The notes below the pieces were generated by a model, which was not told the DNA's origin, searched no databases, and was given only the letters and a program-made list of their open reading frames with translations. This document shows positions 2,943 to 29,467 of a DNA stretch of 64,000 bases, piece by piece (the first letter of the stretch is position 1; each line of letters begins with the position of its first letter). Where the stretch lies: the sequence record NC_049849.1. One strand, given 5' to 3'. The translations under genes were made by a program, and so were the position numbers.

Positions 2943-2955
2943 TGTCATTCGTGCA

Positions 2956-5201: not shown

Positions 5202-6551
5202 ATGAGTCGCGTCAAAGTTTCAAGTCCAAGAGTTGAGACCGCTGTACTACGTGGCATGTGCCACAAGGACTTGGCTGTCAGCGGTACTCTAGTGTCCAGC
5301 ATGGATACGTCGTACTTCAGTTCTGAAATCACGACGGAGATTTTTGAGTACATTCGTGAGGCGTTCCATCAAGACGGCAAGAGCCCGCGATACAAAGTCT
5401 TGTTGGAAGACCCCAGCCTAAGCAAGGCTGCTCGGCAGTACCTGCGTGACTCCGAAGGTTCGATTGACTCGAAGAGCGATGCAAAGAAGGCCATCAAGGT
5501 CCTGAGCAAGTATCGTCAAATTCGTGAGATTGCAAACCTCGCACACTACCTGTCTGATTCTATCCAAGAGGATAAGCCGGACATGGAAGAAATGATGGAC
5601 AAGGCAACGCAGATGCTGGCGACGGCACGCGCTACCAAGTCCAGCAAAGATGACTTCGTTCACTTTGGTAAGAAGTCGACTTCGAAAGAACTGGTCAATG
5701 AACTACTCTTCAGCAAGAAGTCTGAACGTGTGATTCCTTCGGGGTTCCAGACGTATGACTCAGTCTCTGGTGGGTTCTTGCGCGGGTCGCTGTTCACCAT
5801 CGGCGGTACGTCGGGTGGCGGTAAGTCGCAGCTGGCATCCTCTATGGCAGTCAGCTTCTGCGAGCGTGGGTTTCGAGTAGTAGTCGTGCCTCTTGAAATG
5901 GGCAAGAGCGACATGCTGGCTCGTATGATGGCCAAGGTCTGCAAATTCGACTCGGGTCGCTTGCTTAAAGAAGACCTGCCCCTCGACATTGCAAAGAAGC
6001 TGGCAAAGAAATTCGCCAAGTGGGAAGCCAAGTGTGCCGAGAATGGCGGACGTTATACGATCTACAAGCCGCCTGGCGATCCGTACATTGAGGATATCTA
6101 CGCCGCGGTAGCTCCCCTCAAAGCCGACGTTCGCGTCATCGACTATATCTCGTTGACCAAAGAGCGCCAAGGCGTTGACCAATGGAAGAAGCTCGGTCAG
6201 GATTCGCGTTACGGCAAGATTGATGCTGAAGCGAATCAATGCGTAAATATCCAGTTGTGTCAGATTAGCGAGGAAGGCAAGGTGAAGTACTCGTCGGCGA
6301 TCAAGGAACACTCCAGTGATGCTTGGTTCTTCGTTGCTACCGATGAGACGAAAGAGCAGGGCATCATTCGCATCACGCAGGAAAAGTCACGTAACGGCAA
6401 TGGCTTCCCGTTCACGCTGGGTATCTCTTATGAGCACTCGGACGTGTACGACTTGGAAGACTGGGACCAGAACCAACCACGCAACGCACTAGGTAACACT
6501 GAAGCTCAAGAGCAAGAGCTCAAAAACTTCAGCAATCAAGCGGACGTTTAA
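5202..6551 (+). CDS. dnaB: replicative DnaB-like helicase
   Basis: Walker A GGTSGGGKS, VPLEM, Walker B VIDYISL, QLCQI, ITQEKSRNG; N-terminal helical domain. Confidence 0.85.
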   Translation: MSRVKVSSPRVETAVLRGMCHKDLAVSGTLVSSMDTSYFSSEITTEIFEYIREAFHQDGKSPRYKVLLEDPSLSKAARQYLRDSEGSIDSKSDAKKAIKVLSKYRQIREIANLAHYLSDSIQEDKPDMEEMMDKATQMLATARATKSSKDDFVHFGKKSTSKELVNELLFSKKSERVIPSGFQTYDSVSGGFLRGSLFTIGGTSGGGKSQLASSMAVSFCERGFRVVVVPLEMGKSDMLARMMAKVCKFDSGRLLKEDLPLDIAKKLAKKFAKWEAKCAENGGRYTIYKPPGDPYIEDIYAAVAPLKADVRVIDYISLTKERQGVDQWKKLGQDSRYGKIDAEANQCVNIQLCQISEEGKVKYSSAIKEHSSDAWFFVATDETKEQGIIRITQEKSRNGNGFPFTLGISYEHSDVYDLEDWDQNQPRNALGNTEAQEQELKNFSNQADV

Positions 6552-9500
6552 ATGCTAGATAAACAGTTCAAGTACAAGATTCCTGACCACGACGAGAAGT
6601 CGTACCAGCTGTCATTGAGTCGCTGTTCCAACTGGAGCAGTGGCAAGGAGCGTACTCTGATCGTATTGCAGACCGTGCCGACTGAGAGTCTGTCGAGCGG
6701 TGTGCTGATGAGCAAAGGCTTGGTGGCGAACACCATCAAGAACTGCATCAACTTCTCGAAGGAGAATGCCAAGAAGCATTACGGTGTCAGCTTCAACAGC
6801 ACGTATGCGGTCGTTAACTTCAACAATCGCAAGCACATGCACCTCAAAGGCCAAGGCCGTCAGGATGCAGAGGTTGAGTTCGGCAAGCGGCTGAAGAGCA
6901 TCATCAAAGACTTGAAGCCGACGCGCATCTTGGTGTCTGGTGATATCGCAGCCGAGCAACTCCTTGCTATTGAAAACCTGGAGTTCAAGCGCGGCTGGAT
7001 TCACGACTACAAGGGCATGACTGTCGTCAATACGCTGGACTTGGATCAGCTGCTGGCGAAGGGCGGTGCTCTTGCAAACCTGCTGGGCTATTGGACGCGT
7101 CACCTTACCAATCTGATGATCGGTAAGAACCCGTTCGATCTGTCGAAGCTCAAGGCTACGGCAATCTATGTAGACACGATTGAGAAGTTTGACCGCATGA
7201 TGGTTCGGTTGAAGAAGGCATCCGAGATTGCCATCGACACTGAAACCAAGAACCTGTCAGTCCTGCATAACAAAATCTATACGATCCAGTTTGCGACTGA
7301 TATCAATCCCGACGAGGGATTCGTGCTGCCGCTATGGCATCCGAAGACTCCCTGGTCGAAAGAAGACCTCAAGTACATTCGCAAGACGCTGCGAGCATTC
7401 CTGTTGAACAAGCATCCGAATGATGCCATGTTTGTGTACTTCAATGGGATGTTTGACTTGCGCATCATGCGTCAGCAGTTCAAGATTCCGATTCTGCGTC
7501 AGCGCACTTGGGAAATCACAGCGGGCGAACACTTGCTCGATGAGAACACCAAGGACTTGAAGAACTGCGGCAAGAAGACGAAGATGAAAGGCTCGGGTTG
7601 CGGCCCTGGCGGTTTGCTGCACACCTATGCACGGTATGGCAACGACCACTACTTGACTGCGGACTTCTCGAAAGAGGAGCGCACGACCACGGGTAACATT
7701 GAACCGTCCGACAAGAACTTCCTGCTGTACGCGGCAACTGACGTTGTGGCATTGCTCGGCATTCGCAAGATGCAGCTCAAGGCAGCGGCCACATACGAAA
7801 TCGAGGGGAAGTCCTACAGGCCGTACTACGAGAAGCACGTCATTCACATGATGGGCTCGACGGCTCACCAGCTGTCGCACCTGATGAATGACGGCTCGTA
7901 CGTTGACACCAAGTACTTGAAGAAGTTGATCGGCAAGGCCTCGCCTCTGCTCAACGAAATCAACAAGGTGCTGGAGAAGATGCGCACGGTGCCGGCCTTC
8001 GTCGATGCCAACGCTCGCATTCTCGCAGCCAATGGCATCAAGGCCAAGTCGCTGTTCGGCGGTCCTGCTCAGTGGGCGTTCGCTCCGTCGAAGACTGCGC
8101 ATCTGCGCGTCCTATTCTTTGACGTGCTGGGGTTGGAATCTGTCGCAGAAACGAAGAGTGGTGCCCCTTCGACCGGCAAGGAATTCCTGAAGCACTACAA
8201 GTCTATTCCTGAAGTCGCGCTGTTCGCTGAATGGCAGAAGATGCAGAAGCTGCTTTCGACCTACGTGAAGGGCTGGGCTCGTCGCATGGGTAAGGACGAA
8301 GACTCATTGACCGATGACTTCATCCGCGCAGGCTATTCGTTCTTCGGCGTGAACACTGGTCGCTTGAACTCGCGTGATCCGAACTTCCAACAGATTCCGT
8401 CGCACGGCGATCTGGCGAAGATCATCAAGCGTCTGTTTATTGCGCCCAAGGGTCGACTCCTCATCCGTTATGACTATTCGGCACACGAAGTACGTGGCTG
8501 GTCGATCATTGCGAAGGACGAGGTACTGGCCAACGCATTCAGGGCAGGTCAGAAGCTGCGTCAGCAATGGATTCAAAGTCCGACTGACGAAGTGAAGAAG
8601 GAACTGAAGCAGAAGGGTGACATTCACATTCAGAACGTGTATCGATTCTGGAAGAAGTGGGTGGGCAAGGACGACCCGATGCGTCAAGCCGTTAAGGCTG
8701 TGGTGTTCGGCGTGCTGTACGGCAAGTCGGCAAAGAGCCTGGGTGTTGATATCGGCGCAGACGAGAAGGAAGCGCAAGCGATCATTGACAAGATGTTCTC
8801 TGAGTTCAAGATGGGTGCTCAGTGGACAAAGAAGATGAAGTCGTTGGCTGAGAACAAGTACTATGTGTACTCGATCATCGGCCGTCGTCGTAATCTCTAC
8901 GCAGGTCTGACTGGTGAGAAGGGAATCATTAGCCAGCAGATTCGTCGCGGGTCTAACGCTCCGATCCAAGGCTTCGCATCTGAAATCGGCATGAAGGCAG
9001 GCCGCATCATCACCGAGTACTACTATGATGACGTGCAAGCGCTGATGCAGAAGTTCGACCCTGACCTTGAGTACGAAGACATGGTGCTGCAAGCTAACCG
9101 CACGGTGCACGATGCGAACTACTACTCGGTGCCGTACTCGATGGTGATTCCATTTATCCACATGCTGCAGCACGGTGCGACGTACGGCGTGGCGCGACGC
9201 ATGGAGAAGGAGTTCGACTTCAAGTTCACGGTCGAGCCTGAAATCGAAATCGAAATCGGCGGACGTGACGACAAGACCTACAAGTGGGACTGGTCGTTGC
9301 CGAACCTGATTGAGTGCATCGAGAAGGCAGTGCATGACACGCACGACCTAGGTCAGCTTGATGGTACGCCGGCCGAGGTGATGGCGAAAATCATGGCTCC
9401 GTATCAAGACTCGAAAACTCGTAAATACCTGCAAGAGAAATATCCCCTGCTTGGTATCACGAAGCTTGAGCCGCAAATCAAATCGGCAGTACCTGACTAT

Positions 9501-9719
9501 CTCAAGCAGTTGGGTACGAAGGTAGATAAGATTTCGGCGCAGGTCGATGACTTGATTAAGCTCAACAAGAAAGCCAAGGACGGAATCTTGAAAGAGAAGG
9601 TCGATGGTAAGAAGGTTGAGCGAGACGTTGGCAAGGAACTGAAGCAGGCTGAAGCTAGTCATGCAGCAGCTCTTGACGATCATCGCAGGTTCAAAGCGTT
9701 GCAAAAGGAAATGGCATAA
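6552..9719 (+). CDS. polA: family A DNA polymerase with 3'-5' exonuclease and N-terminal UDG-like domain
   Basis: ExoI AIDTET, FNGMFDL, YAATD; TGRLNSRDPNFQQIP; motif A YDYSAHEVR; motif B RQAVKAVVFGVLYG; NAPIQG; motif C TVHDA. Confidence 0.92.
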   Translation: MLDKQFKYKIPDHDEKSYQLSLSRCSNWSSGKERTLIVLQTVPTESLSSGVLMSKGLVANTIKNCINFSKENAKKHYGVSFNSTYAVVNFNNRKHMHLKGQGRQDAEVEFGKRLKSIIKDLKPTRILVSGDIAAEQLLAIENLEFKRGWIHDYKGMTVVNTLDLDQLLAKGGALANLLGYWTRHLTNLMIGKNPFDLSKLKATAIYVDTIEKFDRMMVRLKKASEIAIDTETKNLSVLHNKIYTIQFATDINPDEGFVLPLWHPKTPWSKEDLKYIRKTLRAFLLNKHPNDAMFVYFNGMFDLRIMRQQFKIPILRQRTWEITAGEHLLDENTKDLKNCGKKTKMKGSGCGPGGLLHTYARYGNDHYLTADFSKEERTTTGNIEPSDKNFLLYAATDVVALLGIRKMQLKAAATYEIEGKSYRPYYEKHVIHMMGSTAHQLSHLMNDGSYVDTKYLKKLIGKASPLLNEINKVLEKMRTVPAFVDANARILAANGIKAKSLFGGPAQWAFAPSKTAHLRVLFFDVLGLESVAETKSGAPSTGKEFLKHYKSIPEVALFAEWQKMQKLLSTYVKGWARRMGKDEDSLTDDFIRAGYSFFGVNTGRLNSRDPNFQQIPSHGDLAKIIKRLFIAPKGRLLIRYDYSAHEVRGWSIIAKDEVLANAFRAGQKLRQQWIQSPTDEVKKELKQKGDIHIQNVYRFWKKWVGKDDPMRQAVKAVVFGVLYGKSAKSLGVDIGADEKEAQAIIDKMFSEFKMGAQWTKKMKSLAENKYYVYSIIGRRRNLYAGLTGEKGIISQQIRRGSNAPIQGFASEIGMKAGRIITEYYYDDVQALMQKFDPDLEYEDMVLQANRTVHDANYYSVPYSMVIPFIHMLQHGATYGVARRMEKEFDFKFTVEPEIEIEIGGRDDKTYKWDWSLPNLIECIEKAVHDTHDLGQLDGTPAEVMAKIMAPYQDSKTRKYLQEKYPLLGITKLEPQIKSAVPDYLKQLGTKVDKISAQVDDLIKLNKKAKDGILKEKVDGKKVERDVGKELKQAEASHAAALDDHRRFKALQKEMA

Positions 9720-9732
9720 GCCATTCCTCACT

Positions 9733-9764
9733 AGCGGGACTGCCTAAGCGGTGGTCCCGCTTTT
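9733..9764 (+). terminator. rho-independent terminator
   Basis: AGCGGGAC...GTCCCGCT stem followed by a T-run, just after the polA stop. Confidence 0.7.
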
Positions 9765-9780
9765 ACCCATTGAGGTGTTC

Positions 9781-10404
9781 ATGTTTGGCACAATCACCCT
9801 GGCGTCGAATGGCGGCCTGGAAGTTCTACCCATCTTTAAAAACCATCTGAGTGGCACACATAATCCGGGCCGTCAGAATGGAACCTGGGTCCTTGAAACT
9901 TATGACGAGTCGGCAGAGGTCTACCTACCGCAACGTGATAAGCACGTAACGATCTGGTGCAACGATCCCGAGCACTACTTCTGGACTGAGTACTTGCAGT
10001 CCCAAGAAGCGACGAAAGATACGCAACGCGCAAAGCTACAGAAGGTAGCGCGCAACTTGCCTGGAAACATCAACTACGCTGTACTCAATACCGAAGGCGA
10101 CCATGGGTCTATCTCGCTGTTGACTCCTGAGTACAATGGCGCCGCAATCGCCGTTTCGGTCGTCATCAGTCAGCGCTCAGCTCAGTTGCTGTGGTCGATC
10201 AGTGAAGACGAAGACTTGATCGAAAAGCTGCGCGCAAGCGATCCACGCATGTACTCGATCTACAGGTTCCCCGAAGTCCGCGGCGCCATGTTCATCAACA
10301 CTCTGGCCGTGTGCTCGAAGTGGTGGAAGTGGATGCAGACCTTTGAAGGTAATACGTTGAAGTGCTGCAATGCACTCGAGGTCATGCTGTGTAAGGAACG
10401 TTGA
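9781..10404 (+). CDS. hypothetical protein
   Basis: GAGG RBS before ATG 9781; 207 aa. Confidence 0.6.
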   Translation: MFGTITLASNGGLEVLPIFKNHLSGTHNPGRQNGTWVLETYDESAEVYLPQRDKHVTIWCNDPEHYFWTEYLQSQEATKDTQRAKLQKVARNLPGNINYAVLNTEGDHGSISLLTPEYNGAAIAVSVVISQRSAQLLWSISEDEDLIEKLRASDPRMYSIYRFPEVRGAMFINTLAVCSKWWKWMQTFEGNTLKCCNALEVMLCKER

Positions 10405-10405
10405 T

Positions 10406-11395
10406 ATGTCGGACTATCTAGACCGGCAAGACAAGCTGGCATTCGTTCTCGACCAGATGCGTCAGTACTCAGGTGAAGCCAAGCGCCTGTCTGGCTCTAC
10501 GATGATTCTCTGTCCGTTCCATGCGGACGCCACGCCGAGCTGTCGTATCTTTCACGGCTCTGATACGAAGTACCCTGGAGCATTCAAATGCTATGGATGC
10601 CCCGAAGGTGGCGGCTGGAACAAGATCGCCGAGCACATCGGACTGCAGCCGTACAAGCCTGGCAAGCCTACGACGAAATATGCGTTGGGCATCAATCTCG
10701 CGCTAGAGGATGATGAGCCGATTGACGATGCGTACTTCACGACTGAGCTGCCGAAGGGTAAGAAGTGGCGGTCGATCCCCACTAACTTCCTACGCAAAGT
10801 CGGGTGCAAGTTCTATCACTCCGAGAAGTACAACACCAAGTACCTGTTCATGCCAGTCATCGTGAATGGCGAAATGAAAGGCTTTGTGCGCGGGCGTCTC
10901 CGCAAGGAAGAAGGCAAGCCGTCGTATCTGAACTCTAAGACTGCATGGACTGCGACCTACGGGTTCTTTCCGTTTGACTTCGCAATCAAACGCGCAAAGA
11001 AGTACAAGCGCATCGTCTTGGTCGAGGGGCAACGCGATGCTCTGCGGCTTCTCATGATGGGCATTCCGGCCGTGGCTATTCTCGGGTCGCAGTCGTGGAC
11101 AGAGTACAAGGCGCAGCTGCTCGAGCTCTATGGCATTGAAGAATGTGTGCTGCTATTCGACGGCGATCCTGCAGGCATCAAAGCAACGAAGACCGCACTA
11201 ACGTTTCTGAAGCCGCACTACAAGTGCACGGTCATCAAGCTGTGGAAGCTCGAAGGTTCTCCGTATCACGAGTACAAGCAAATCAAGTCGAAGAAAAAGC
11301 GCAAGGCTTTCAAGAGCAAGCTTTGGGACCCGGGCAATTGCCCTGAATGGATTTTAGATCGAATCAAGGAGAAGTACTTTGCTAGCTCTGCTTAA
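10406..11395 (+). CDS. dnaG: DNA primase (DnaG-like, CHC2 zinc finger + TOPRIM)
   Basis: CPFH...CYGC zinc finger; TOPRIM LVEGQRDAL and FDGDPAG; start refined to 10406. Confidence 0.88.
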   Translation: MSDYLDRQDKLAFVLDQMRQYSGEAKRLSGSTMILCPFHADATPSCRIFHGSDTKYPGAFKCYGCPEGGGWNKIAEHIGLQPYKPGKPTTKYALGINLALEDDEPIDDAYFTTELPKGKKWRSIPTNFLRKVGCKFYHSEKYNTKYLFMPVIVNGEMKGFVRGRLRKEEGKPSYLNSKTAWTATYGFFPFDFAIKRAKKYKRIVLVEGQRDALRLLMMGIPAVAILGSQSWTEYKAQLLELYGIEECVLLFDGDPAGIKATKTALTFLKPHYKCTVIKLWKLEGSPYHEYKQIKSKKKRKAFKSKLWDPGNCPEWILDRIKEKYFASSA

Positions 11396-16981: not shown

Positions 16982-17428
16982 ATGGTCTGGCAATCTACCA
17001 AAACGTACGGTCATGAAGTTGGACTGAGCTGCGCATTCCGACAATGGCGCGCTCACTCGCATTGCCGTTTCGTTCATGGGTACGCACTGGCATTCAAGTT
17101 CGTCTTCGAGACTGAAGAGCTGGACAGCACGAACTGGGCAGTGGACTTCGGCGGCCTCAAGTCGTTGAAGCAAATGCTGCAAGACACGTTTGACCACAAG
17201 ACTGTTGTTGCCGAAGACGATCCCGAACTCGAATGGTTCAAGGAAGCAGAGAAGCGTGGCATCCTCGAACTGGTGGTACTGCCGCATGGTGGCTGCGAGA
17301 AGTTTGCAGAGTTCACGTATGAAGCCGCTGAGCAGTGGCTCAAGGATGCGGGCTTCAGTCCTCGTTGCCGACTGGTCTCTGTTGAAGTCTCCGAGCACGG
17401 CGCCAACTCCGCAATCTTCAAGCGTTAA
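16982..17428 (+). CDS. queD: 6-carboxy-5,6,7,8-tetrahydropterin synthase
   Basis: HSHCRFVHGY, VDFGGLK, FDHKT; T-fold size; Que cluster context. Confidence 0.9.
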   Translation: MVWQSTKTYGHEVGLSCAFRQWRAHSHCRFVHGYALAFKFVFETEELDSTNWAVDFGGLKSLKQMLQDTFDHKTVVAEDDPELEWFKEAEKRGILELVVLPHGGCEKFAEFTYEAAEQWLKDAGFSPRCRLVSVEVSEHGANSAIFKR

Positions 17429-17430
17429 TT

Positions 17431-18033
17431 ATGAAACCAATCATTCTTCTGTACGGTGGTGGCATCGACTCGACTACGCTACTGGCGCACCTGTCTAAGC
17501 ACCGTCGAGTATATGCAATGTTCTTTGCCTACGGTCAGAAGGCCGAAGCGTTGGAGCGCGAAGCCTGCAAGTATTTCTGCGAACGCTACCACGCTGAGTT
17601 CGTTGAAGTCAAGCTGCCCATTTCGGAACTCGCGGACTCCGCGATCCTGAACGGCGGTGCTCTGGCTGACAATCCCGCTATCAACATTGTTGATGGTCGC
17701 AACCTGACGTTCATTACCTTGGCTTCGATGTTCGCGGCCAAGGTAGACGTGACTGAGATTGCTGTAGGCTTCCATGTTGAGCCGGTAGCGCGCCCCTTCC
17801 CGGATGCGAGCCCCGAGTTCCTGGATGCAGTTAACACGATGCTGCCGCAAGCCTTCGTACACAAAGCTCAAGTCGTTGCTCCTTTCAAGGACATGACCCG
17901 CGCTGAAATCTTCCGATACGCGGATTCGATGGACTCAGAAATTCTGGCCCAAGCACATACGTGCTATGAAGACGTACCCGGTGGTTGCGGCAAGTGCAGC
18001 CACTGCCTAATCAAAGCAGAACTAACGGAGTAA
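17431..18033 (+). CDS. queC: 7-cyano-7-deazaguanine synthase
   Basis: PP-loop GGGIDS, FAYGQ, VDGRN, YPD-like FPDAS, zinc cluster TCY...CGKCSHC. Confidence 0.88.
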   Translation: MKPIILLYGGGIDSTTLLAHLSKHRRVYAMFFAYGQKAEALEREACKYFCERYHAEFVEVKLPISELADSAILNGGALADNPAINIVDGRNLTFITLASMFAAKVDVTEIAVGFHVEPVARPFPDASPEFLDAVNTMLPQAFVHKAQVVAPFKDMTRAEIFRYADSMDSEILAQAHTCYEDVPGGCGKCSHCLIKAELTE

Positions 18034-18036
18034 TCC

Positions 18037-19317
18037 ATGTGTGGCATCATCCTCGCAGCCGGTCCCAAGTATCTGTCCGGCGGATACATGAGCACTCAAC
18101 TGAGCCATCGTGGTCCTGACGCAGACACCGCAGGCGTGAACGGCAACGTATTCATTGCGCATCGTCGCTTGGCTATCGTTGACACTACATCGCTGAATGC
18201 TCAACAGCCACGATTTAAAGCGCAGCAGTACGCTTGCGTTTTCAACGGCGAGCTTTTCAACTACAAGAAACTGACGTGTGGTTCCGAGATTGAGCTGATT
18301 TCGGAACTGCTGTATGCTGGGCACGATCTGAGTCAGATACTCAATGGCTACTACGCCGTCGCCATGCACGATATCTCCCGCAATCGCATCACCCTGGCTC
18401 GCGATATCTTTGGCGTCATGCCTTTGTTCTATGCGAAGTACGAGGGTTCCTTCTTTGTCGCGTCTGAGCGCAAGGCAATGTATGCGCTGGTTCCCGAAGA
18501 CAAGATCAAGCCGGTGCCTGCTAACACTCGCATCGACTACTGCTTGAAGACTCGAAAGCTCACGTTCACCAAGTACACGCAGCCTTGGACGTTCAATCTG
18601 CCGGGCGTCATCTACGGCCCGTACGAAAGCCACACGGCTCAAGTCTTTCTCAATGCAGTGCGCGAAGTTGCACAGCATAGCGATAACGGATTCTCGGTTG
18701 CTCTATCCGGCGGCCTGGATTCGTCGTTGGTTCTGGCAGCGTGCCGTGGCTTGGGTCTGACGCCCACCGCGATTCTCACGACGTACATTGCAGAGACCGA
18801 AACCGAAGAAATGCGCAGCGCCAAGGCTCTGGTCAAGCACTTCAAGTGGGAGCATCTGCATAAGCTCATCAAACTCGAAGAGCCCGACTACGACCTGCGA
18901 CACTGGATCGAAACGCCGCCGAATCCGATTCGTGATTTTGCGTATCGTCGTCATGCTGCAGTTGCCAAGCACAGTCCGAGCAAAGTGATCCTGTGCGGTG
19001 AAGGTGCTGATGAGCTAGGCCTCGGCTATCCTCTAAATGGCGAGTTCAATACCCCGCTCGCACGATACATGAAGAAGGTTTCGCTGTTGAAGTCTCAAGC
19101 TACAATGACGCTCGATCGCGTTAACACGGCTGGTATGCAGTACTCGAAAGAATATCGCGTGCCGTTCCTACATATCCCATTTGTGCAGCACGCGTTGACT
19201 GTCGACCAAGTCGGCAAGACGCACTTCCGCAAGATGGCAACGTATCTTGGGATTCCTGACGGCATCCTACCGAATAACAAATACTCCGATGAAGAACGCA
19301 TCGGTCGAGCCCAATGA
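18037..19317 (+). CDS. asparagine synthetase B-like glutamine amidotransferase
   Basis: N-terminal Ntn nucleophile MCGI, HRGPD, HRRLAIVD, FNGELFN, ARDIFG; PP-loop SGGLDSS; GEGADEL. Confidence 0.85.
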   Translation: MCGIILAAGPKYLSGGYMSTQLSHRGPDADTAGVNGNVFIAHRRLAIVDTTSLNAQQPRFKAQQYACVFNGELFNYKKLTCGSEIELISELLYAGHDLSQILNGYYAVAMHDISRNRITLARDIFGVMPLFYAKYEGSFFVASERKAMYALVPEDKIKPVPANTRIDYCLKTRKLTFTKYTQPWTFNLPGVIYGPYESHTAQVFLNAVREVAQHSDNGFSVALSGGLDSSLVLAACRGLGLTPTAILTTYIAETETEEMRSAKALVKHFKWEHLHKLIKLEEPDYDLRHWIETPPNPIRDFAYRRHAAVAKHSPSKVILCGEGADELGLGYPLNGEFNTPLARYMKKVSLLKSQATMTLDRVNTAGMQYSKEYRVPFLHIPFVQHALTVDQVGKTHFRKMATYLGIPDGILPNNKYSDEERIGRAQ

Positions 19318-20735
19318 AAAACAAGAAACAAGTAGCGACTGTCGAGCATGTTGGCTACGACTTGATGCCCGCCGCTGTAGACTTCTTTGATACTTTTGAG
19401 AGTGTCGGAGTCAAGTACGGCAACAACAAGCAGAGCAAGTGGTGGACTCGCGATCTGCGCGATGGTGTCCATGTCTTCTATCTGCCGGATCGTACGCTCT
19501 ACCGTGGACGTGCCGGAGCGACTCAGTCGTGCATTGCCAGTGTTGAAGTCGATGAGTTCCTTGAGTACTCGTTGCTGAGCAATCCCGAGCTGTACTCTAG
19601 CTGGGGCCTGCGCTACGCAATGATTAGCCCGCCACATATGGGGTTCAAGCCGGCTCCGGTACGCAATCCGCATATCCGTTTGTTCGCGGACTCGGGTGGC
19701 TTCCAGATTCGCCAAGGCGTCACCGACTTCATTGATCCCAATACTCTGGTCGACTTCTACAACAAGACGACTGACATTGGTATCGGCCTTGACGTTCCTA
19801 TGCACCCGTTGCTGTATCCGAAGATGCTGCAGCGCATGGCGCATGTTACCTGCATGAACGGCGAGTACATCAAGAAGCAACTGAACCCTGGCGTCATGCT
19901 GTACGATCTGAACCACGGCATGGACTTGGTCGACCGCAAGGCTTTCCTCGACGTGACCGAAAAGTACGAGCCGCTCGATGGTATCTCGCTGGCTGGTACG
20001 TCGAGCAATGCGCGTGGTGAGTACGGCGTGTCTGCGCACATCGTTAACGGCGTGGTTGGTATCGCATATGTCCTGGCTCGTTCTGCCAAGCGTTATCGCA
20101 CGGCTCACATCCTGGGCACCACGACTCCGTTCTATATGTTCGTGTTCAACGTCATGACTCGCGGCAAGTTCTTTCCGCATATCACATCTGATAGTTCGAC
20201 GTACGCGCAAGCGGCAATCATGAATACGCACTTGATGGGCATCCCCGGCATCAACATGCTGCGACGGAATCCGATGCCGAAGACTGATCTGTCGACTCTG
20301 CCATGCAGCTGCCCTATCTGCCACATGACGAAGTACACGCAGTCGTACGTAATCAACAATCGGTCAAACATGATTCACAGCATCTGGTACTACGTTCAGA
20401 TGATGCGCTACACGGAGCACTTGGCTGACGAGTTCCTGGCAGGCCGTACCAAGGACTTGGAAATCCTGAAGGTGCTCGGACCCTCGACGTTTAGCCCTGT
20501 CCACATGAAGGGTACGATGCGATTCCTACGCGACCTGATCGAGCACGGCTACAACAAGGCTTATGCGAACAGCAAGGACTTCATTCACTCGATGCTGGGT
20601 AAGAAGACCACGACCAATCTCTTTGGTGGCGAGCGTTCGGCTGGAGTCTTACACGGTGATGCCGAACGTACGGACCGCATTCTCACCAGCTACGAAACGT
20701 ACCATAAGAAGACCGGAGTGAAGAAGCGCAAATGA
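19314..20735 (+). CDS. TGT/DpdA-family guanine transglycosylase
   Basis: ADSGGFQ, LDVP, HILG, SDSSTY (nucleophilic Asp), zinc site CSCPIC...H; lies inside the Que cluster. Confidence 0.8.
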   Translation: MKNKKQVATVEHVGYDLMPAAVDFFDTFESVGVKYGNNKQSKWWTRDLRDGVHVFYLPDRTLYRGRAGATQSCIASVEVDEFLEYSLLSNPELYSSWGLRYAMISPPHMGFKPAPVRNPHIRLFADSGGFQIRQGVTDFIDPNTLVDFYNKTTDIGIGLDVPMHPLLYPKMLQRMAHVTCMNGEYIKKQLNPGVMLYDLNHGMDLVDRKAFLDVTEKYEPLDGISLAGTSSNARGEYGVSAHIVNGVVGIAYVLARSAKRYRTAHILGTTTPFYMFVFNVMTRGKFFPHITSDSSTYAQAAIMNTHLMGIPGINMLRRNPMPKTDLSTLPCSCPICHMTKYTQSYVINNRSNMIHSIWYYVQMMRYTEHLADEFLAGRTKDLEILKVLGPSTFSPVHMKGTMRFLRDLIEHGYNKAYANSKDFIHSMLGKKTTTNLFGGERSAGVLHGDAERTDRILTSYETYHKKTGVKKRK

Positions 20736-21337
20736 AAGTAGAAATCAAAACGTTTGAAAACGTGTGGGGCTGCGCTGTATTCAACGCCGAGCTGCATCGG
20801 AAGATGAAGCATCATCATTTGGTGGTCGGCGTCGATACGCTATTCAGTTCCAAATACAAGCCGGTCAAAGGCAAGACCACAATCGTCATCGACAACTTTG
20901 CACGTCTGCGCAGTAGCGGCGTTCCTATCATCGGGTACGAAAAGTCTCCGACGCAGACCTGGGTGAAAGTTAAAGCTAGCTGGAAGAAGCCGAAGCCCAA
21001 CAAGCCCGAGATTAAGAAGCCGGTGTATCTGGCAGGCGAACTCAAGGTGCTGCTCCCTACGGTTCCGCTGATGCTCGAGTATCAAGCCGCCGTGACCTTG
21101 GAGCAGATGGAAGCTCTGGCCGAGAAGTACAGAGCTGAAATCGACAAGCCTAAGAAAGGCTCACACAAGTGGTTGCGTCGTTCGGTCAACAGCACGCTCA
21201 AGGTCCTGGCGCCTGAGAAGTATGACCCCAAGTTTAAAGAGAAGGCCGCAGCTGCTCCTAAGTCCAAGCTTGGTGCCAAGGCGAAGAAAGCGAAAGACGT
21301 AAATACAGAAGTCGCTAAGAGGAAGGGCAAGAAATGA
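20732..21337 (+). CDS. hypothetical Lys-rich protein within the Que cluster
   Basis: Coupled ATGA overlaps on both sides. Confidence 0.6.
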   Translation: MKVEIKTFENVWGCAVFNAELHRKMKHHHLVVGVDTLFSSKYKPVKGKTTIVIDNFARLRSSGVPIIGYEKSPTQTWVKVKASWKKPKPNKPEIKKPVYLAGELKVLLPTVPLMLEYQAAVTLEQMEALAEKYRAEIDKPKKGSHKWLRRSVNSTLKVLAPEKYDPKFKEKAAAAPKSKLGAKAKKAKDVNTEVAKRKGKK

Positions 21338-22182
21338 AAGACGTGATTGTCATTCAAAACGTCGACCGAGTAATTCGACCTAAGGACTATGAAACCCTCG
21401 GCGAGAAGATTCGAGTAACGTCGATCTTCCGTACGATTCAAGGCGAAGGTCCGTATACCGGATATCCTTCGGTCTTCGTTCGACTGTCGGGCTGCAACTT
21501 CGGTAACAAGGCAGAGGACTCCGCGTGCCGTTGGTGTGATACAGCCTTCCAGTTCGATCAAGGCTATGATTACACGGCAGAAGAACTCCTGGCTGCAGTG
21601 CAGAATCAGCCTGACTTCCACGCCTCTGACGTTGTAGTCATCACTGGTGGTGAGCCGACGCTGCAACACAATCTGCTGAAGTTCATGAAGCTGTGCCATG
21701 AGAACGACCTGTCTATGCAGATTGAGACCAACGGCACACAGCCCTCGTTCTACCAGCAGATAGAAGAGCTTGATGAAGAAGGAACCCTGCCTTATACTTT
21801 TGTAGCGAAGGGTACAGGTGTCTTGCACGTCGTGAGTCCCAAAGCGATTTACAAGGCCGGCAAGATTCCGCAACCTAGTCAGCATGTCCTGAAGGCTACC
21901 GCGTGTCTCAAGTTCGTCGTGTCATCTGATCCTGAGAGCCCGCATCACGAAGTGCCCGAGTGGTCGCGTAGTGCCCGCAACAAGTTCCGAAGCATACCCG
22001 TGTATGTTTCGCCCATGGCCGTTTACAAGCGAGCGTACGCTGGTGAAGTCTCATCCATTTGGGACCGAGACCTCATCGACCAAGAGCGCACGGCAGCTAA
22101 CTACGCGTATGCTGCACAGTACGCGATGGCTAATGGTTTCCTGCTATCACTCCAAACTCACTTGTTCACGTCGATACCATGA
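21334..22182 (+). CDS. queE: 7-carboxy-7-deazaguanine synthase (radical SAM)
   Basis: IFRTIQGEG, VFVRLSGC, CX10CX2C cluster motif, VITGGEP, IETNGT, SPK, LSLQTH. Confidence 0.9.
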   Translation: MKDVIVIQNVDRVIRPKDYETLGEKIRVTSIFRTIQGEGPYTGYPSVFVRLSGCNFGNKAEDSACRWCDTAFQFDQGYDYTAEELLAAVQNQPDFHASDVVVITGGEPTLQHNLLKFMKLCHENDLSMQIETNGTQPSFYQQIEELDEEGTLPYTFVAKGTGVLHVVSPKAIYKAGKIPQPSQHVLKATACLKFVVSSDPESPHHEVPEWSRSARNKFRSIPVYVSPMAVYKRAYAGEVSSIWDRDLIDQERTAANYAYAAQYAMANGFLLSLQTHLFTSIP

Positions 22183-22538
22183 ACAACCCCAATCCCTCCG
22201 TTGACGATATATTGTACCTTCTTCGTCGTGGCATCAACGGCGAGGTTGCCGTCACTTACAAAGACTACCCCTTATTCAAGGGACCGAGCCAGTTCATAAC
22301 GTACTTCGGTAACTGCACTGTCGTGTTTTTCGATGACGGCGGCGGATGCCTGAAGTATGTAGAGAGCGCAAGCGACGCGCACGGCAACGTCGCTGTGTAC
22401 TCCGATTGGCACAACGCTTGGCTCGAAGCTAACAAAGACGAAGAAGACGATTGGTTCCGCGATCCCATCGAACTGCTGAGCGACGCTGAATACATTGAAC
22501 TGCTGGACGTGCTCCAGCGCGCAACAAAGAAGGACTGA
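22179..22538 (+). CDS. hypothetical protein
   Basis: Coupled 119-aa ORF. Confidence 0.55.
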   Translation: MNNPNPSVDDILYLLRRGINGEVAVTYKDYPLFKGPSQFITYFGNCTVVFFDDGGGCLKYVESASDAHGNVAVYSDWHNAWLEANKDEEDDWFRDPIELLSDAEYIELLDVLQRATKKD

Positions 22539-22540
22539 AC

Positions 22541-23200
22541 ATGACTTACACTACCGATCACAAGACTGGCCTCGACGTTCGAGCACATCTGATTGAGCAA
22601 GGCGTAGAGACGCCGTTCACTCCGAAGAAGATTGACCAGACGCGCTTGCAAGTTCTGTTTGCAGAGCTGCACCGCGAGGTCGGTCTCGACTTGGCAGACG
22701 ATTCGATCGCTGAGACTCCGCGCCGCCTGGCCAAGCTGTACTCCACGCAAGAGTACTTCCGCGGTCTCGACTACGCGAACTTCCCGAAGGCCACGGTCGT
22801 GGACAACAAGATGGGCTACGACGAAATGGTGGTTGAGCGCAACATCATCGTCAACAGCCTTTGTGAGCATCACTGGCTGCCCATCATTGGCGGCGCTTTC
22901 GTCGCGTACATTCCCGAGAAGAAAGTCATCGGTCTGTCGAAGCTCAATCGCCTCGTTGACTTCTTCTGCCGACGCCCGCAGATTCAAGAGCGCCTGGTAG
23001 AGCAAATCTATCACGCTCTGTCGTTCCTGCTGGAGACTAAGAACGTCGCAGTCGTGATTGAAGCAGAGCATATGTGCGTCAAGACGCGTGGCGTTGAAGA
23101 TGCGTGCTCTGACACCGTGACTTCGAAGCTCGGCGGCAAGTTCCGCGATCCCGCTCTGCGTGCTGAGTTCCTTACTCTTGCCAAAGGACTGCGTGGATGA
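22541..23200 (+). CDS. folE: GTP cyclohydrolase I
   Basis: ETPRRLAK, SLCEHHWLP, VIGLSKLNR, RRPQIQERL, EAEHMC. Confidence 0.95.
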   Translation: MTYTTDHKTGLDVRAHLIEQGVETPFTPKKIDQTRLQVLFAELHREVGLDLADDSIAETPRRLAKLYSTQEYFRGLDYANFPKATVVDNKMGYDEMVVERNIIVNSLCEHHWLPIIGGAFVAYIPEKKVIGLSKLNRLVDFFCRRPQIQERLVEQIYHALSFLLETKNVAVVIEAEHMCVKTRGVEDACSDTVTSKLGGKFRDPALRAEFLTLAKGLRG

Positions 23201-25983: not shown

Positions 25984-26269
25984 TCGGCAAGTCAACACTG
26001 ACTACGTTGAAGGCCTTGAGCGCGCAGTCCAGACCAGCGATGCAATCAGGGCTGCTGTAGCCGACGGCTTAGACGTTGCGCAAGTCATGACTCAACACCT
26101 CGCGCGGCACACGCAGCACAAGGCGCAGAGTCTGCAAGCTGTTATTGAGACAACCCTGCTTGCACTCCAAGCACTGCAGGGTCTTGATGACTCGAATCAG
26201 AAAATCGTAAATAAGATCGTCGATGCACTAACGACTTCTATTGGTGCATCCAAACTGAGGAATAACTAA
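25949..26269 (+). CDS. hypothetical protein
   Basis: Helical 106-aa ORF; start refined. Confidence 0.5.
   Translation: MSEITTLLNLLDRQVNTDYVEGLERAVQTSDAIRAAVADGLDVAQVMTQHLARHTQHKAQSLQAVIETTLLALQALQGLDDSNQKIVNKIVDALTTSIGASKLRNN
26205..26213 (+). promoter_or_regulatory. TCGTAAATA motif upstream of the SSB gene
   Basis: Exact motif about 57 nt before ATG 26270. Confidence 0.55.
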
Positions 26270-27784
26270 ATGGCAAAGCAGAAAGGTACTGACCTCGACG
26301 GTTACAAGTCGGGCCGCAGCAATGACGACCGCAAGCGTCCTGAAGATATCGTTGACGTACTGAAGGTACCCGACAACGGTGACAAGTGGACCACGGTTCG
26401 TATGATTGGCATCCTCGCCACGTACGCTGGCTACTGGGTCACGACGACGAAGAAGGACGGCAAGGAAGGCACGTTCTACACGCCCAGCCCTTCGTACGAT
26501 CCCGAGTCGCAAGAGTTCGACCGTTCCAAGTATGACCCGTGGCTCGACGCAGCGGATCGTTTGAACACGCAAGATCGCCGAGTCATCAGCCCGCGCCGTG
26601 TGGCATACTCGAACGTCATTGTGCGCGCTGAGCAAAAGAAGGCGCCGAAGAAGAAGCCGAAGCCGACCAAGGCCGAGTTGAAGTCGGGCTTCAAGGATAA
26701 GGAATCGGAAACCTGGACGCCGGTCCGCGTTATGGCGTTCCCTTCGTCGTTGATGAACAAGATCATCAAGTTCAAGAACGCCAACATGGTCGAGACCAAG
26801 AAAGGCGAGAAGGGCTACCATGTCAACGATCCGAAGTACGGCTGCGATATCCGTATCTCCTACGACTCGAAGGCTTCCGGTACTGACAAGTACTCGGTGT
26901 TGATGGCTGATCGCAAGCCCATCACCGAAGAAGAATCCGAATACCTGCTGTACGATATCTCCGAACTGCAAACGGTGCCGGACGAAGCAGAGGTGAAGCG
27001 CGACTTCGAATCGTGGGCCAAGCGTAACGGCATCAAGCTCGGCAAGAACAAGTCGAAGGATGATGACGACGAAGAAGACGATATCGACGAGGACGAAGAC
27101 GACCTCGATGATGACGACGAGCCGAAGTCGAAAAAGAAGGGCAAGGGCAAGGGCAAGGCCGACAAGAAGTCGAAGGGCAAGAAGAAGTCCAAGTCTGATG
27201 ACGACGAAGACGAAGACGAGGATGAAGATGACCTCGACGACGAAGACGACGAAGACGAGGATGACGACGAACCCAAGTCGAAAAAGAAGGGTAAAGGCAA
27301 GCCCGCCAAGTCCAAGAAGTCGAAGGATGATGATGATGACGACGAAGACGAGGATGAAGATGAAGATGAAGATGACGACGATGATTCGGATGACGATGAT
27401 GAGGATGACTCTGACTCGGATGATGAAGACGATGACGACGATGACTCGGATGATGACGAGGACGATGATGAAGATGAGGATGACGACGACGAGCCCAAGT
27501 CGAAGAAGTCCAAGTCTAAGTCGAAAGGTAAACCCGCCAAGGGTAAGAAGAAGTCCAAGTCTGATGATGATGACGAAGACGATGATGACCTAGACGACGA
27601 TGACTCCGATGATGAGGACGAAGACGACGACGAAGATGAGGACGATGAGCCCAAGTCGAAGAAGTCGAAGAAAGCCAAGTCGAAGAGTAAGGAAAAGTCC
27701 AGCAAGAAGGGCAAGAAGTCGAAGGGTAAGAAGAAGTCCAAGTCGGATGATGACGAAGACGAAGACGACGACATTCCTTTCTAA
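26270..27784 (+). CDS. single-stranded DNA-binding protein (T4 gp32-like core) with long charge-block tail ending DDDIPF
   Basis: Core motifs TTVRMIG, YSNVIVR, VMAFPSSLMNKI, NDPKYGCDI resemble gp32; the C-terminal DDDIPF is identical to the bacterial SSB tip; gene lies upstream of recA. Confidence 0.7.
   Translation: MAKQKGTDLDGYKSGRSNDDRKRPEDIVDVLKVPDNGDKWTTVRMIGILATYAGYWVTTTKKDGKEGTFYTPSPSYDPESQEFDRSKYDPWLDAADRLNTQDRRVISPRRVAYSNVIVRAEQKKAPKKKPKPTKAELKSGFKDKESETWTPVRVMAFPSSLMNKIIKFKNANMVETKKGEKGYHVNDPKYGCDIRISYDSKASGTDKYSVLMADRKPITEEESEYLLYDISELQTVPDEAEVKRDFESWAKRNGIKLGKNKSKDDDDEEDDIDEDEDDLDDDDEPKSKKKGKGKGKADKKSKGKKKSKSDDDEDEDEDEDDLDDEDDEDEDDDEPKSKKKGKGKPAKSKKSKDDDDDDEDEDEDEDEDDDDDSDDDDEDDSDSDDEDDDDDDSDDDEDDDEDEDDDDEPKSKKSKSKSKGKPAKGKKKSKSDDDDEDDDDLDDDDSDDEDEDDDEDEDDEPKSKKSKKAKSKSKEKSSKKGKKSKGKKKSKSDDDEDEDDDIPF
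27050..27781 (+). repeat. intragenic low-complexity repeat: alternating Asp/Glu and EPKSKK-led Lys blocks
   Basis: Four GA(G/A)CC(C/G)AAGTCGAA(A/G)AAG units separated by GAY/GAR runs. Confidence 0.85.
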
Positions 27785-27809
27785 GCAGTCGTAGGTAATC
27801 CATAACTCG

Positions 27810-27851
27810 AGGGAGCCCCTTTACTCAAGGGCGCTCCCTTCGTTCGTTTTC
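27810..27851 (+). terminator. rho-independent terminator
   Basis: AGGGAGC-CCCTT / AAGGG-C-GCTCCCT stem followed by a T-rich tail. Confidence 0.6.
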
Positions 27852-27865
27852 AGGAAAATTTTTGC

Positions 27866-29467
27866 ATGGCAAAGAAAGAGAAAGACGCAAAAGCAAAGAA
27901 GACCAAGGTCAAGGCTGACGACAAGGAACTGAAGAAAGCCAAGAAGGCGGTCAAGGCTGTGATTGACGACGCTGAGAAGAAAACCAAGAAAGCCCTGAAG
28001 GCTGCAAAGGCAAAGAAGTCGAAGTCGCGGTCCGATGATGACGAAGTAGATGACGACGGCGACGAAGCTTCTGGTGAAGCGGGGTTCGATCCCTACGCGC
28101 ATATGAACTCCGACCTGGATGAAATCGAACGCCAGGTACAAGTTACATCGGGTCTCGAAGAAGACGCATTCCCCATGTCCACGGGTCTGCTGATGAAAGA
28201 CTTGATGCTGGGTGGTGGCATTCGCCCCGGCATGTACACGACTGCAGGTGGCGAGCAATCGACCAAGACCACTTCGGTTATCAACGACTTCGCGGCTGCT
28301 ACCCTCGCTGGTGTGCCGATCAAGTCGTGGTGGGACTACGAAGGTTCGACGGTCAACAGCCATCCGTACGTTGAGTCGATCATGCGAGCCAACGGCATCA
28401 AGAAAACGGCGCGTGATTTGTTTGGTGTGCGTGACTCTGCTACTGGCAAGTACATCGTCACTCCGATTATCCGTTTCCAAACGGAGTCGATTCTCGAAAA
28501 GTTCTTTGACTACTTTCACGGTATGCTCAAGCGTCTGCCGAACAAGCGACTGCTGGCGGGCAAGTGGTGGTACATCTATGAGGACTCGAAAGAGAACCAG
28601 AAGAAGTACGGCGAGTTCGCTTCAAAGAAGATGCCCAAGATGTACGGCAAGGGCATCTACATTCCTGTACCGAACGACGATGGGTCGCTGCAAGCTGTGG
28701 TCGGCGTTGACTCGTATCCGGCAATGAATCCTCTGCTGAACGATGAGGACGAGGCCAACGAAGGTCTGGCTCTGAATGCCCGTCGATTCTCCAAGCTGCT
28801 GCCCCGCGTGAAGGGCCTGCTGGTACAAAAGCGCGTGGCACTCCTCGGCGTGAATCAGTTGCGTGATATCCCGATGGCTCGATACGGTCCGACTCAGATG
28901 GAACCCGGCGGCAAGGCTTTGCAGTTCAACTCGGACGTGCGCCTCTGGAATTCCAGCCGTGCCCTGTCTGGTGTGCCGTACGGCAATCCGAAGGGTGAAG
29001 GCAAATTTGAGTTTGAAGATTCGATCACCGGCGAAGGCAAAGATCGCTACCGCTACATTCATCAGAAGATGGTGAAGAATAAGCTGAGTCAGGAAATCCC
29101 CGAAGTGTGGTATCGCCTGTGGGTCGAAGACGTGAACGGCGAAGCGCAGGGGTATGACCCGGTGTGGGATACGATCTACTACTTGTTTGTCACGGGTCAG
29201 GTCTCGGGTAAGCGTCATGCCATGACGTTGAACTTGGAGAAGCTCGGCGCAGCCAAGAAGTCTACGAGCTGGAAGGAACTCAAGCTGTGGGTTCTCGGTA
29301 GCAAGGACGACAAGAAAAAGATCAGTGAGCGCTTGGGCTACAAGCCAATGGACCTTCGCAAGTTCTGCTTCTCGCAGATGAAGAAGGGCACGAGCAAGGA
29401 GTTGTACTTTGCCCAACAAAATAAAAACGCGAAAAACAAGGATTCATCCGACGATTCGGAAGACTGA
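27866..29467 (+). CDS. recA: RecA/UvsX-like recombinase with Lys-rich N-terminal extension
   Basis: STGLLMKDLMLGGGIRPG, variant P-loop GEQSTKTT, VGVDSYPAM, GVNQLR, PGGKALQFNSDVRL. Confidence 0.85.
   Translation: MAKKEKDAKAKKTKVKADDKELKKAKKAVKAVIDDAEKKTKKALKAAKAKKSKSRSDDDEVDDDGDEASGEAGFDPYAHMNSDLDEIERQVQVTSGLEEDAFPMSTGLLMKDLMLGGGIRPGMYTTAGGEQSTKTTSVINDFAAATLAGVPIKSWWDYEGSTVNSHPYVESIMRANGIKKTARDLFGVRDSATGKYIVTPIIRFQTESILEKFFDYFHGMLKRLPNKRLLAGKWWYIYEDSKENQKKYGEFASKKMPKMYGKGIYIPVPNDDGSLQAVVGVDSYPAMNPLLNDEDEANEGLALNARRFSKLLPRVKGLLVQKRVALLGVNQLRDIPMARYGPTQMEPGGKALQFNSDVRLWNSSRALSGVPYGNPKGEGKFEFEDSITGEGKDRYRYIHQKMVKNKLSQEIPEVWYRLWVEDVNGEAQGYDPVWDTIYYLFVTGQVSGKRHAMTLNLEKLGAAKKSTSWKELKLWVLGSKDDKKKISERLGYKPMDLRKFCFSQMKKGTSKELYFAQQNKNAKNKDSSDDSED

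Follow-up and report, generated by a model that had tools for sequence, protein, structure and literature searches.

The gene considered here lies at positions 19314-20735 of a 64,000-nucleotide stretch of sequence record NC_049849.1 (hereafter the window) and encodes a transglycosylase of Achromobacter phage Motura. The window corresponds to bases 1-64000 of the Motura genome (MN094788.1), and the 1422-bp stretch of the gene is 100% identical at 19314-20735. Motura, a jumbo myovirus, infects Achromobacter animicus and has a genome of 221 kb (221,431 bp as reconstructed). GenBank annotates the gene product, QDH83434.1, as 'tRNA guanine transglycosylase'. The protein is a member of the tRNA-guanine transglycosylase (TGT) superfamily, and we argue that its substrate is probably the phage's own DNA. 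The open reading frame (ORF) and its neighbours are arranged as follows.

16982-17428, plus strand: QueD (6-carboxytetrahydropterin synthase, PTPS family)
17431-18033, plus strand: QueC (synthase of 7-cyano-7-deazaguanine, preQ0)
18037-19317, plus strand: asparagine-synthetase-B-like (AsnB-like) glutamine amidotransferase of 426 residues, with an MCG N-terminus and GATase_7 and Asn_synthase domains
19314-20735, plus strand: transglycosylase ORF, intact, 473 residues, QDH83434.1
20732-21337, plus strand: orphan basic protein of 201 residues, isoelectric point (pI) 10.1, 45 Lys+Arg, with an ATGA overlap with both neighbouring genes
21334-22182, plus strand: QueE, the radical S-adenosylmethionine synthase of 7-carboxy-7-deazaguanine (CDG)
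22179-22538, plus strand: 119-residue protein between QueE and FolE, with a DUF7693 match below threshold (E 3e-4)
22541-23200, plus strand: FolE (GTP cyclohydrolase I)

The transglycosylase is translationally coupled on both sides, its ATG overlapping the stop codon of the upstream gene (ATGA) and its own stop codon overlapping the next ATG. It thereby sits inside a FolE-QueD-QueE-QueC operon for preQ0, all of whose genes are on the plus strand. Flanking the operon are genes for thymidylate synthase, dUTPase, single-stranded DNA-binding protein, RecA and primase, which form a DNA-metabolism module. The 201-residue protein yielded no lead in Pfam, PHROG or the Atlas, and no fold lead; it may assist the transglycosylase as a partner that binds DNA. 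7-Deazaguanine modification of DNA is one of the major means by which phages counter restriction and some CRISPR systems, and DpdA serves as the signature gene by which they are predicted.

The fold of the Motura protein was recognized through its relatives. The single sequence has no Pfam match (E ≤ 0.01), no PHROG match and no PDB match by phmmer, so that assignment to a family had to go through a profile built from its homologues. Searches for these gave 56 relatives, the majority of full length. The AlphaFold2 model built with the family alignment has a mean predicted local distance difference test score (pLDDT) of 87.3 and a predicted template modelling score of 0.88, and displays a TGT-type TIM barrel. 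In a Foldseek search of the PDB the leading matches were QTRT1, the archaeosine TGT (arcTGT) and Zymomonas mobilis TGT (E 3e-11 to 3.5e-7), with the CBASS protein Cap10 next. VIA-align gave Z scores of 22.9 to arcTGT (305 residues) and 20.7-21.7 to QTRT1 and bacterial TGT (bTGT), with 301-319 residues aligned overall; unrelated TIM barrels scored no higher than 12. At the sequence level, the family profile matches arcTGT (PDB 1iq8) with an E value of 5.5e-10 over profile positions 86-380, and the alignment pairs the DSGxFQ, LDxP, (H/Q)G, HxxG, DSxxY and PCSCPVC blocks. The defining elements of the TGT superfamily are all found: a (β/α)8 barrel, three active-site aspartates and a structural zinc site of the form CxCx2Cx(n)H. 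Public family models see little of this: the Pfam TGT model (PF01702) misses the Motura protein and matches five of 28 relatives weakly (best E 5.2e-6), and the NCBIfam model of archaeal TgtA gives a weak local match (E 5.5e-5, 21.8 bits against a cut-off of 350).

The predicted active site is spread over the following motifs, for which conservation was counted in an alignment of 196 family representatives.

19689-19706, plus strand: DSGGFQ (D126-Q131, within FADSGGFQ), with D126 predicted as general acid/base and F130 as base-stacking residue, by analogy with PMC10164549
19785-19799, plus strand: GLDVP, containing D160, the predicted Watson-Crick-edge recognition residue; aligns to LDIP of arcTGT
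19914-19919, plus strand: H201-G202, aligned to the Gln-Gly of arcTGT and of VH7D DpdA2
19983-20033, plus strand: residues 224-240 (ISLAGTSSNARGEYGVS), the Gly-rich loop that follows β6 and whose counterpart in TGTs and DpdA reads the 7-substituent (PMC10164549)
20106-20117, plus strand: HILG in strand β7, with H265 and G268 each in 196/196
20184-20204, plus strand: TSDSSTY, containing D293 (codon 20190-20192), the predicted catalytic nucleophile
20304-20378, plus strand: zinc site C331-x-C333-x2-C336-x18-H355, with CSCPIC at 20304-20321 and H355 at 20376-20378

The three active-site aspartates are almost invariant (D126 in 194, D160 in 195 and D293 in all 196 representatives), as are H201 (190/196) and G202 (196/196), the three zinc-binding cysteines (194/196) and H355 (196/196). 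Conservation this close to invariance means that the motifs are real and under strong selection. Those on which the initial annotation had relied, ADSGGFQ, CSCPIC...H, HILG and SDSSTY, are all present at the expected places, and their retention across 196 members is far above chance. The transglycosylase is most likely a catalytically competent member of the superfamily.

Two regions are added to this conserved core, one after the first barrel strand and the other at the C-terminus.

19353-19382, plus strand: barrel strand β1, residues 14-23 (GYDLMPAAVD), with P19 in 153/196 and A20 in 167/196
19383-19568, plus strand: insertion 1 (Ins1), residues 24-85, a five-strand β-subdomain in the β1/α1 loop, with conserved P58-D59-R60 and D80
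20550-20732, plus strand: C-terminal extension beyond the TGT-aligned core, residues 413-473, comprising two helices, a low-confidence linker and a Lys/Arg tail
20616-20624, plus strand: [S/G]-L-F motif, residues 435-437, with L in 166/196 and F in 167/196

The initial annotation had counted about 110 extra residues in front of the barrel and proposed them as a possible DNA-targeting module, and on both points the model leads elsewhere. The first strand of the model spans residues 14-19. Because the structural alignment to arcTGT begins at model residue 8 (chain residue 27) and the profile alignment picks up again at residue 86 (arcTGT residue 45), the conserved MPAAVD is strand β1. The β1 of arcTGT, which we take to read IMPVVNP, agrees with the offset of +19. 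Since β1 stands at residues 14-23, the additional sequence is an insertion of about 60 residues (24-85) behind that strand; and since DSGGFQ is found at residue 89 of E. coli Tgt, the net displacement of the motif is only about 37 residues, not 110. Ins1 is present in 192 of the 196 family members, with a median length of 63 residues and a β1-to-DSGG distance of 96-125 residues, and its position in the β1/α1 loop is the one named Ins1 in the structure paper on bacterial DpdA (PMC10164549). Folded alone, residues 1-122 reach a pLDDT of 87.6. The subdomain has no fold match in the PDB: the best Foldseek hit has an E value of 0.44, and the best VIA Z score in an exhaustive comparison with 48,161 chains is 3.7. 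It is acidic to neutral, with a pI of 5.7 in Motura and a net charge whose median over the family is +1, and a known DNA-binding fold was rejected on account of both the missing structural match and this charge.

DNA binding is more plausibly assigned to the part of the chain after residue 412, which is basic in 96% of family members (median charge +7.5). This part also carries the [S/G]-L-F motif, which lies in the variable, gappy, low-pLDDT linker between the C-terminal helices. The motif looks like a short linear interaction motif, with a loose resemblance to sliding-clamp-binding peptides. In phages 9g and CAjan, dpdA adjoins genes for clamp or processivity factors.

We estimate at roughly three in four the probability that the transglycosylase acts, in the manner of DpdA, on the phage's own double-stranded DNA. 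The choice of substrate, both DNA as the polymer and the base concerned, is inferred from the operon context, the His-Gly signature, the basic tail, the viral-only distribution and the published phage record. First, the gene is embedded in a preQ0 operon, and every tested phage that carries preQ0 genes together with DpdA has 7-deazaguanines in its DNA (PMC6884629, PMC10516641). Second, a histidine at the recognition position is the state of bacterial DpdA (H181) and a signature of phage DpdA (PMC10164549, PMC6884629). Third, a search of 185,579 bacterial and archaeal genomes, one per species, gave no cellular relative, and the nearest Atlas clusters consist for the most part of viral members (84-100% Viruses). 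The contigs that carry the relatives reach ~240 kb in length, and several are of jumbo-phage size.

The GenBank name stands for a competing explanation, in which a phage arcTGT-like protein would put preQ0 into G15 or G34 of host or phage tRNA and so tune translation during infection. The comparison with arcTGT itself (Pyrococcus horikoshii, PDB 1iq8 and 1j2b) cuts both ways. Its catalytic domain is the best sequence and structure match of the Motura enzyme and its closest solved relative; both have a short spacing between nucleophile and zinc motif, both would use preQ0, and the exact DSGGFQ together with the zinc site matches tRNA TGTs. The tRNA-binding C1-C3/PUA domains of arcTGT, however, are missing from the Motura enzyme, which has no Pfam match to TGT_C2, PUA or DUF5591 and ends in a helical basic C-terminus instead. 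The Motura enzyme has His-Gly where arcTGT has Gln-Gly, and a TSS pocket loop in place of the bulky VVPL; it lacks the N-terminal β-hairpin before β1 and carries a 60-residue β-subdomain after that strand. Nor is the zinc site a mark of a tRNA enzyme, because bacterial DpdA (Salmonella Montevideo) has one too, in the form CxCx2Cx(n)H, along with the three aspartates and H181 (PMC10164549).

The genome offers a tRNA role little to work on. The initial annotation had pointed out that neither tRNA in the window has a GUN anticodon, and this holds for all of Motura: tRNA-Met(CAT) and tRNA-Arg(TCT), both in the window, are its only tRNAs, and the remaining 157 kb carries none. A single gene of the TGT superfamily is present in the whole genome, and QueF, QueA and ArcS were not detected anywhere in its 221,431 bp. 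The gene is viral and belongs to a DNA-metabolism operon, its family was not found in cellular genomes, the phage preQ0 clusters tested so far all modify DNA, and the DpdA of phage 9g failed to complement a tgt mutant (PMC6884629). Taken with the histidine that replaces the TGT glutamine, these observations make a tRNA-modifying role improbable.

Certain results nevertheless weigh against a DNA-acting, DpdA-type enzyme. Subfamily relations were read from profile bit scores and structure scores, at pairwise identities of 10-16%, and by this measure arcTGT, a tRNA enzyme, stands closer to the sequence at 41.7 bits than do the tested DNA enzymes DpdA2 (14.8), DpdA1 (8.2) and DpdA3 (no similarity). 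The Pfam models of DpdA and TGT alike fail to match it. No DpdB-like ATPase partner was identified, and bacterial DpdA needs one; no ParB-like partner is annotated in the operon either. A search for sequencing runs able to reveal a modification turned up assembled contigs only.

If the enzyme is a DNA transglycosylase, a reaction path can be proposed. The co-transcribed FolE, QueD, QueE and QueC would make preQ0 from GTP. The transglycosylase would flip a target deoxyguanosine into the barrel pocket, where D160 and H201-G202 would read the base edge and F130 would stack on the base. D293 would displace guanine, giving a covalent enzyme-DNA intermediate; D126 would serve as general acid/base, and the incoming 7-deazaguanine would resolve the intermediate. 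The zinc site would pin the β8/α8 insertion. The AsnB-like amidotransferase would probably convert the base, before or after its insertion, to an amide or amidine derivative, and the purpose of the whole would be to protect the phage DNA from host restriction.

The dUTPase and thymidylate synthase genes next to the operon suggest engineering of the nucleotide pool, and could point to an enzyme that exchanges the base of free nucleotides or nucleosides, the modified dNTP then being incorporated by the phage polymerase. A 7-amido-7-deazaguanine (ADG) nucleoside in cells infected by phage CP220, as cited in PMC10516641, fits such a pre-replicative route. Yet the basic C-terminal tail points to a polymer as substrate, and the present view of the field is that all such modifications are post-replicative (PMC10516641). 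No enzyme of the TGT superfamily is known to work on mononucleotides. We consider this route very improbable, more so than tRNA modification.

With DNA as the favoured substrate, it can be asked where the Motura enzyme stands among the described transglycosylases. The 28-sequence profile gave 41.7 bits to arcTGT, 14.8 to VH7D DpdA2 (YP_009006086, the protein tested by Cui et al.), 9.0 to E. coli Tgt, 8.2 to CAjan DpdA1 and -2.3 to phiST DpdA3, and hhalign assigned probabilities of 78.6% to DpdA2, 41% to DpdA1 and 0.7% to DpdA3. Among predicted viral structures, Foldseek recovered the enzyme's own family first (BCSR5, probably NCTB, and others; E 1e-26 to 1e-32), then nt-1 DpdA2 (8.7e-9), actinophage DpdA1 (~1e-7) and phiST DpdA3 (2.7e-4). 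A scan for CxCxxC found the motif in Motura, GR7B, BCSR5 and E. coli Tgt, and not in CAjan DpdA1, VH7D DpdA2 or phiST DpdA3. On this motif evidence the zinc site is unusual among phage DpdAs.

A clustering within the bacterial tRNA TGTs, which the initial annotation had named as part of the outcome that would speak against its view, is not seen: the family profile gives E. coli Tgt 9 bits, and hhalign aligns the zinc motif only. The Motura enzyme has His-Gly and a DSS motif, whereas bTGT has Gln and a DCV-type nucleophile motif; bTGT has an N-terminal β-sheet before β1, whereas β1 of the Motura enzyme starts at residue 14. Membership in bTGT was rejected.

With bacterial DpdA, the Motura enzyme shares the TIM-barrel TGT fold, the three invariant aspartates, His-Gly, the zinc site and the exact DSGGFQ, as well as the insertion of preQ0 into DNA that is predicted for it. 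The two differ in the distance from the nucleophile to the first zinc cysteine, which is 38 residues in Motura, as in TGTs, and ~112 in S. Montevideo DpdA; because D293 and C331 are only 38 residues apart, the large helical Ins8 is absent from the Motura enzyme. They also differ in Ins1, a 60-residue β-subdomain in Motura and a 21-residue loop in bacterial DpdA, and no DpdB or DpdC partner was found for the Motura enzyme. Membership in the bacterial DpdA family (PF23859) was rejected, given the short spacing, the lack of an annotated ParB-like partner and the lack of a Pfam match, where we assume that PF23859 is part of the Pfam copy searched.

The nearest described phage subfamily by structure and profile is DpdA2 of the Vibrio phages nt-1 and VH7D (PMC6884629, PMC10516641). 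DpdA2 is of similar length (458 residues), has the DSGGxQ, HxLG and DSSTx motifs, and occurs in large myoviruses with its gene next to FolE. It lacks the CxCxxC zinc motif and has Gln at the recognition position in place of His, the 'conserved histidine' missing from DpdA2 (PMC6884629). A wider family hidden Markov model (HMM) raises the score to 34 bits, over core residues 119-304 only. Such remote homology (14.8-34 bits), together with the histidine and the zinc motif of the Motura enzyme, led us to reject membership.

The remaining phage subfamilies lie further off. DpdA1 (9g, CAjan) and DpdA3 belong to the same superfamily and likewise combine a preQ0 or CDG operon with a transglycosylase, but they are much shorter (306 and 259 residues), and neither has the zinc motif. 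H201 aligns to the histidine of CAjan DpdA1, and the DSS nucleophile motif is shared; the profile score to DpdA1 is 8.2 bits, or 15.9 with the wider HMM, and Foldseek matches to actinophage DpdA1 models are at ~1e-7 (TMq 0.35-0.37). DpdA3 (phiST CGPG_00065) was rejected on an hhalign probability of 0.7% and HMM E values of 0.3-0.5, and tblastn with phiST DpdA3 misses the Motura family. DpdA4 of archaeal viruses (DUF6610, PF20314) was rejected for want of a Pfam match at E ≤ 0.01.

The initial annotation's picture of an enzyme of mixed character holds up: within a preQ0 operon, the protein keeps the zinc site and DSGGFQ, while DSS and His-Gly are DpdA-like. The Motura enzyme is a mosaic of TGT-like and DpdA-like states with two family-specific additions, Ins1 and the C-terminal extension. 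It probably represents a distinct, large viral subfamily outside DpdA1-4 and bacterial DpdA, bacterial DpdA and DpdA4 having been compared through Pfam models and published descriptions only. The size of the subfamily emerges from an exhaustive profile search: at 50% identity it yielded 1133 clusters, of which 627 reach E ≤ 1e-10, and in nearly all of them the match runs from around residue 12 to residue 467.

The neighbourhoods of the relatives bear on the base that is inserted. In about 8 of 13 fetched loci with at least 24% identity, QueE and FolE follow the homologue directly, and QueD stands upstream in five; the contig P0003 has the same order of QueE and FolE after the transglycosylase. 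A homologue of the 201-residue protein lies directly downstream in three loci (L008, L009, L017). The AsnB-like gene is confined to Motura and its nearest relative, and at locus L008 its place is taken by a DUF5591 (ArcS-type) gene. Many relatives are without QueC within 8 kb, for example L003, L009, L016 and L020-L022, in which FolE, QueD and QueE are present; these may have pathways that branch at CDG. At L009 (GCA_013581875.1 contig, 2954-6999), an NAD-dependent epimerase/dehydratase, an AAA_28 protein and proteins of unknown type lie beside the transglycosylase.

Motura encodes a canonical QueC, which predicts that preQ0 is made. The AsnB-like protein matches AsnB structures at 1e-20; it was rejected as an orthologue of Gat-QueC, only the PP-loop being common to it and the 9g protein. 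Its presence predicts an amide (ADG) or amidine (the archaeosine base, G+) as putative end product, formed before or after insertion, and the enzyme may represent a new route to dADG or dG+, or to a new derivative.

It follows that a DNA transglycosylase might insert a base other than preQ0, a variant of the DNA-acting explanation that differs in substrate only: an amidated derivative (ADG or archaeosine base) premade by the AsnB-like enzyme, and CDG or another derivative in relatives without a nearby QueC. The AsnB-like gene is coupled directly upstream, has the catalytic MCG N-terminus and shows clear homology to AsnB, and of the phage DpdAs, DpdA2 is promiscuous and DpdA3 is thought not to use preQ0 (PMC10516641). 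The pocket loop that reads the 7-substituent also varies by clade (L002-L024), as GTSS with a long loop, GIAQ or GIGQ, and short GASYL or GSAYF. GTSS occurs in the two loci with an extra amidotransferase-like neighbour, Motura and L008, whereas clades without such a neighbour have other loops. This correlation, drawn from a handful of loci, hints that different loops go with different inserted bases. The absence of QueC from the vicinity of many relatives fits the same variant, but Motura itself has a canonical QueC, and the 9g, bacterial Dpd and nt-1 systems insert preQ0 and then modify it, or the order is unknown (PMC6884629, PMC10164549). We hold insertion of another base to be possible, though the less probable form of a DNA-acting enzyme.

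A broader evolutionary scenario can be put forward tentatively, and we would not bet on it at even odds. The Motura family would be a fifth phage DpdA lineage, descended from an arcTGT-like ancestor independently of DpdA1-3 with its zinc site kept. Together with the AsnB-like amidotransferase and the basic partner, it would install a 7-deazaguanine derivative by an undescribed route, such as glutamine- and ATP-dependent amidation of either CDG or the base already in the DNA, or else a derivative that is new to DNA, and its clades would insert different bases.

Two further observations concern the genome at large. AT skew is unusually high (0.345) at 26001-28000 compared with the rest of the window, a segment that overlaps an annotated single-stranded DNA-binding protein gene. 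At 74267-77092 of the Motura genome are annotated genes for homospermidine synthase and a glutathionylspermidine-synthase-like protein; such polyamine metabolism genes are already in the literature, and PMC9992855 lists Motura.

The core interpretation is not new: for Motura, a system of deazaguanine in DNA was predicted in 2021 by Iyer et al. (PMC7824862). The literature covered, apart from the 2024 MMBR review and the supplementary tables that accompany Cui et al. (2023), seems not to describe the separate, very large subfamily. Supplementary Data 1 of Hutinet et al. (2019; PMC6884629) lists phage NCTB (LT598654) with FolE, QueD, QueE and QueC and with empty DpdA and DpdA2 columns, and by tblastn NCTB encodes a member of the Motura-type family at 9604-10650. 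According to Cui et al. (2023), all such viruses now have a DpdA1-4 member; they may have filed NCTB-type proteins under an existing name, although by the tests above these proteins are not DpdA3 or DpdA4.

The family has consequences for how modified phages are counted and for how these enzymes evolve. Because it is invisible to the Pfam TGT and DpdA models and comprises at least 1133 clusters at 50% identity, mostly from jumbo phages, surveys that rely on DpdA1-4 or on Pfam would undercount phages with modified DNA. As its members combine traits of TGTs with traits of DpdA, the family lends itself to the study of how a tRNA transglycosylase becomes one that works on DNA, and a new step of biosynthesis may come to light in the coupled AsnB-like enzyme.

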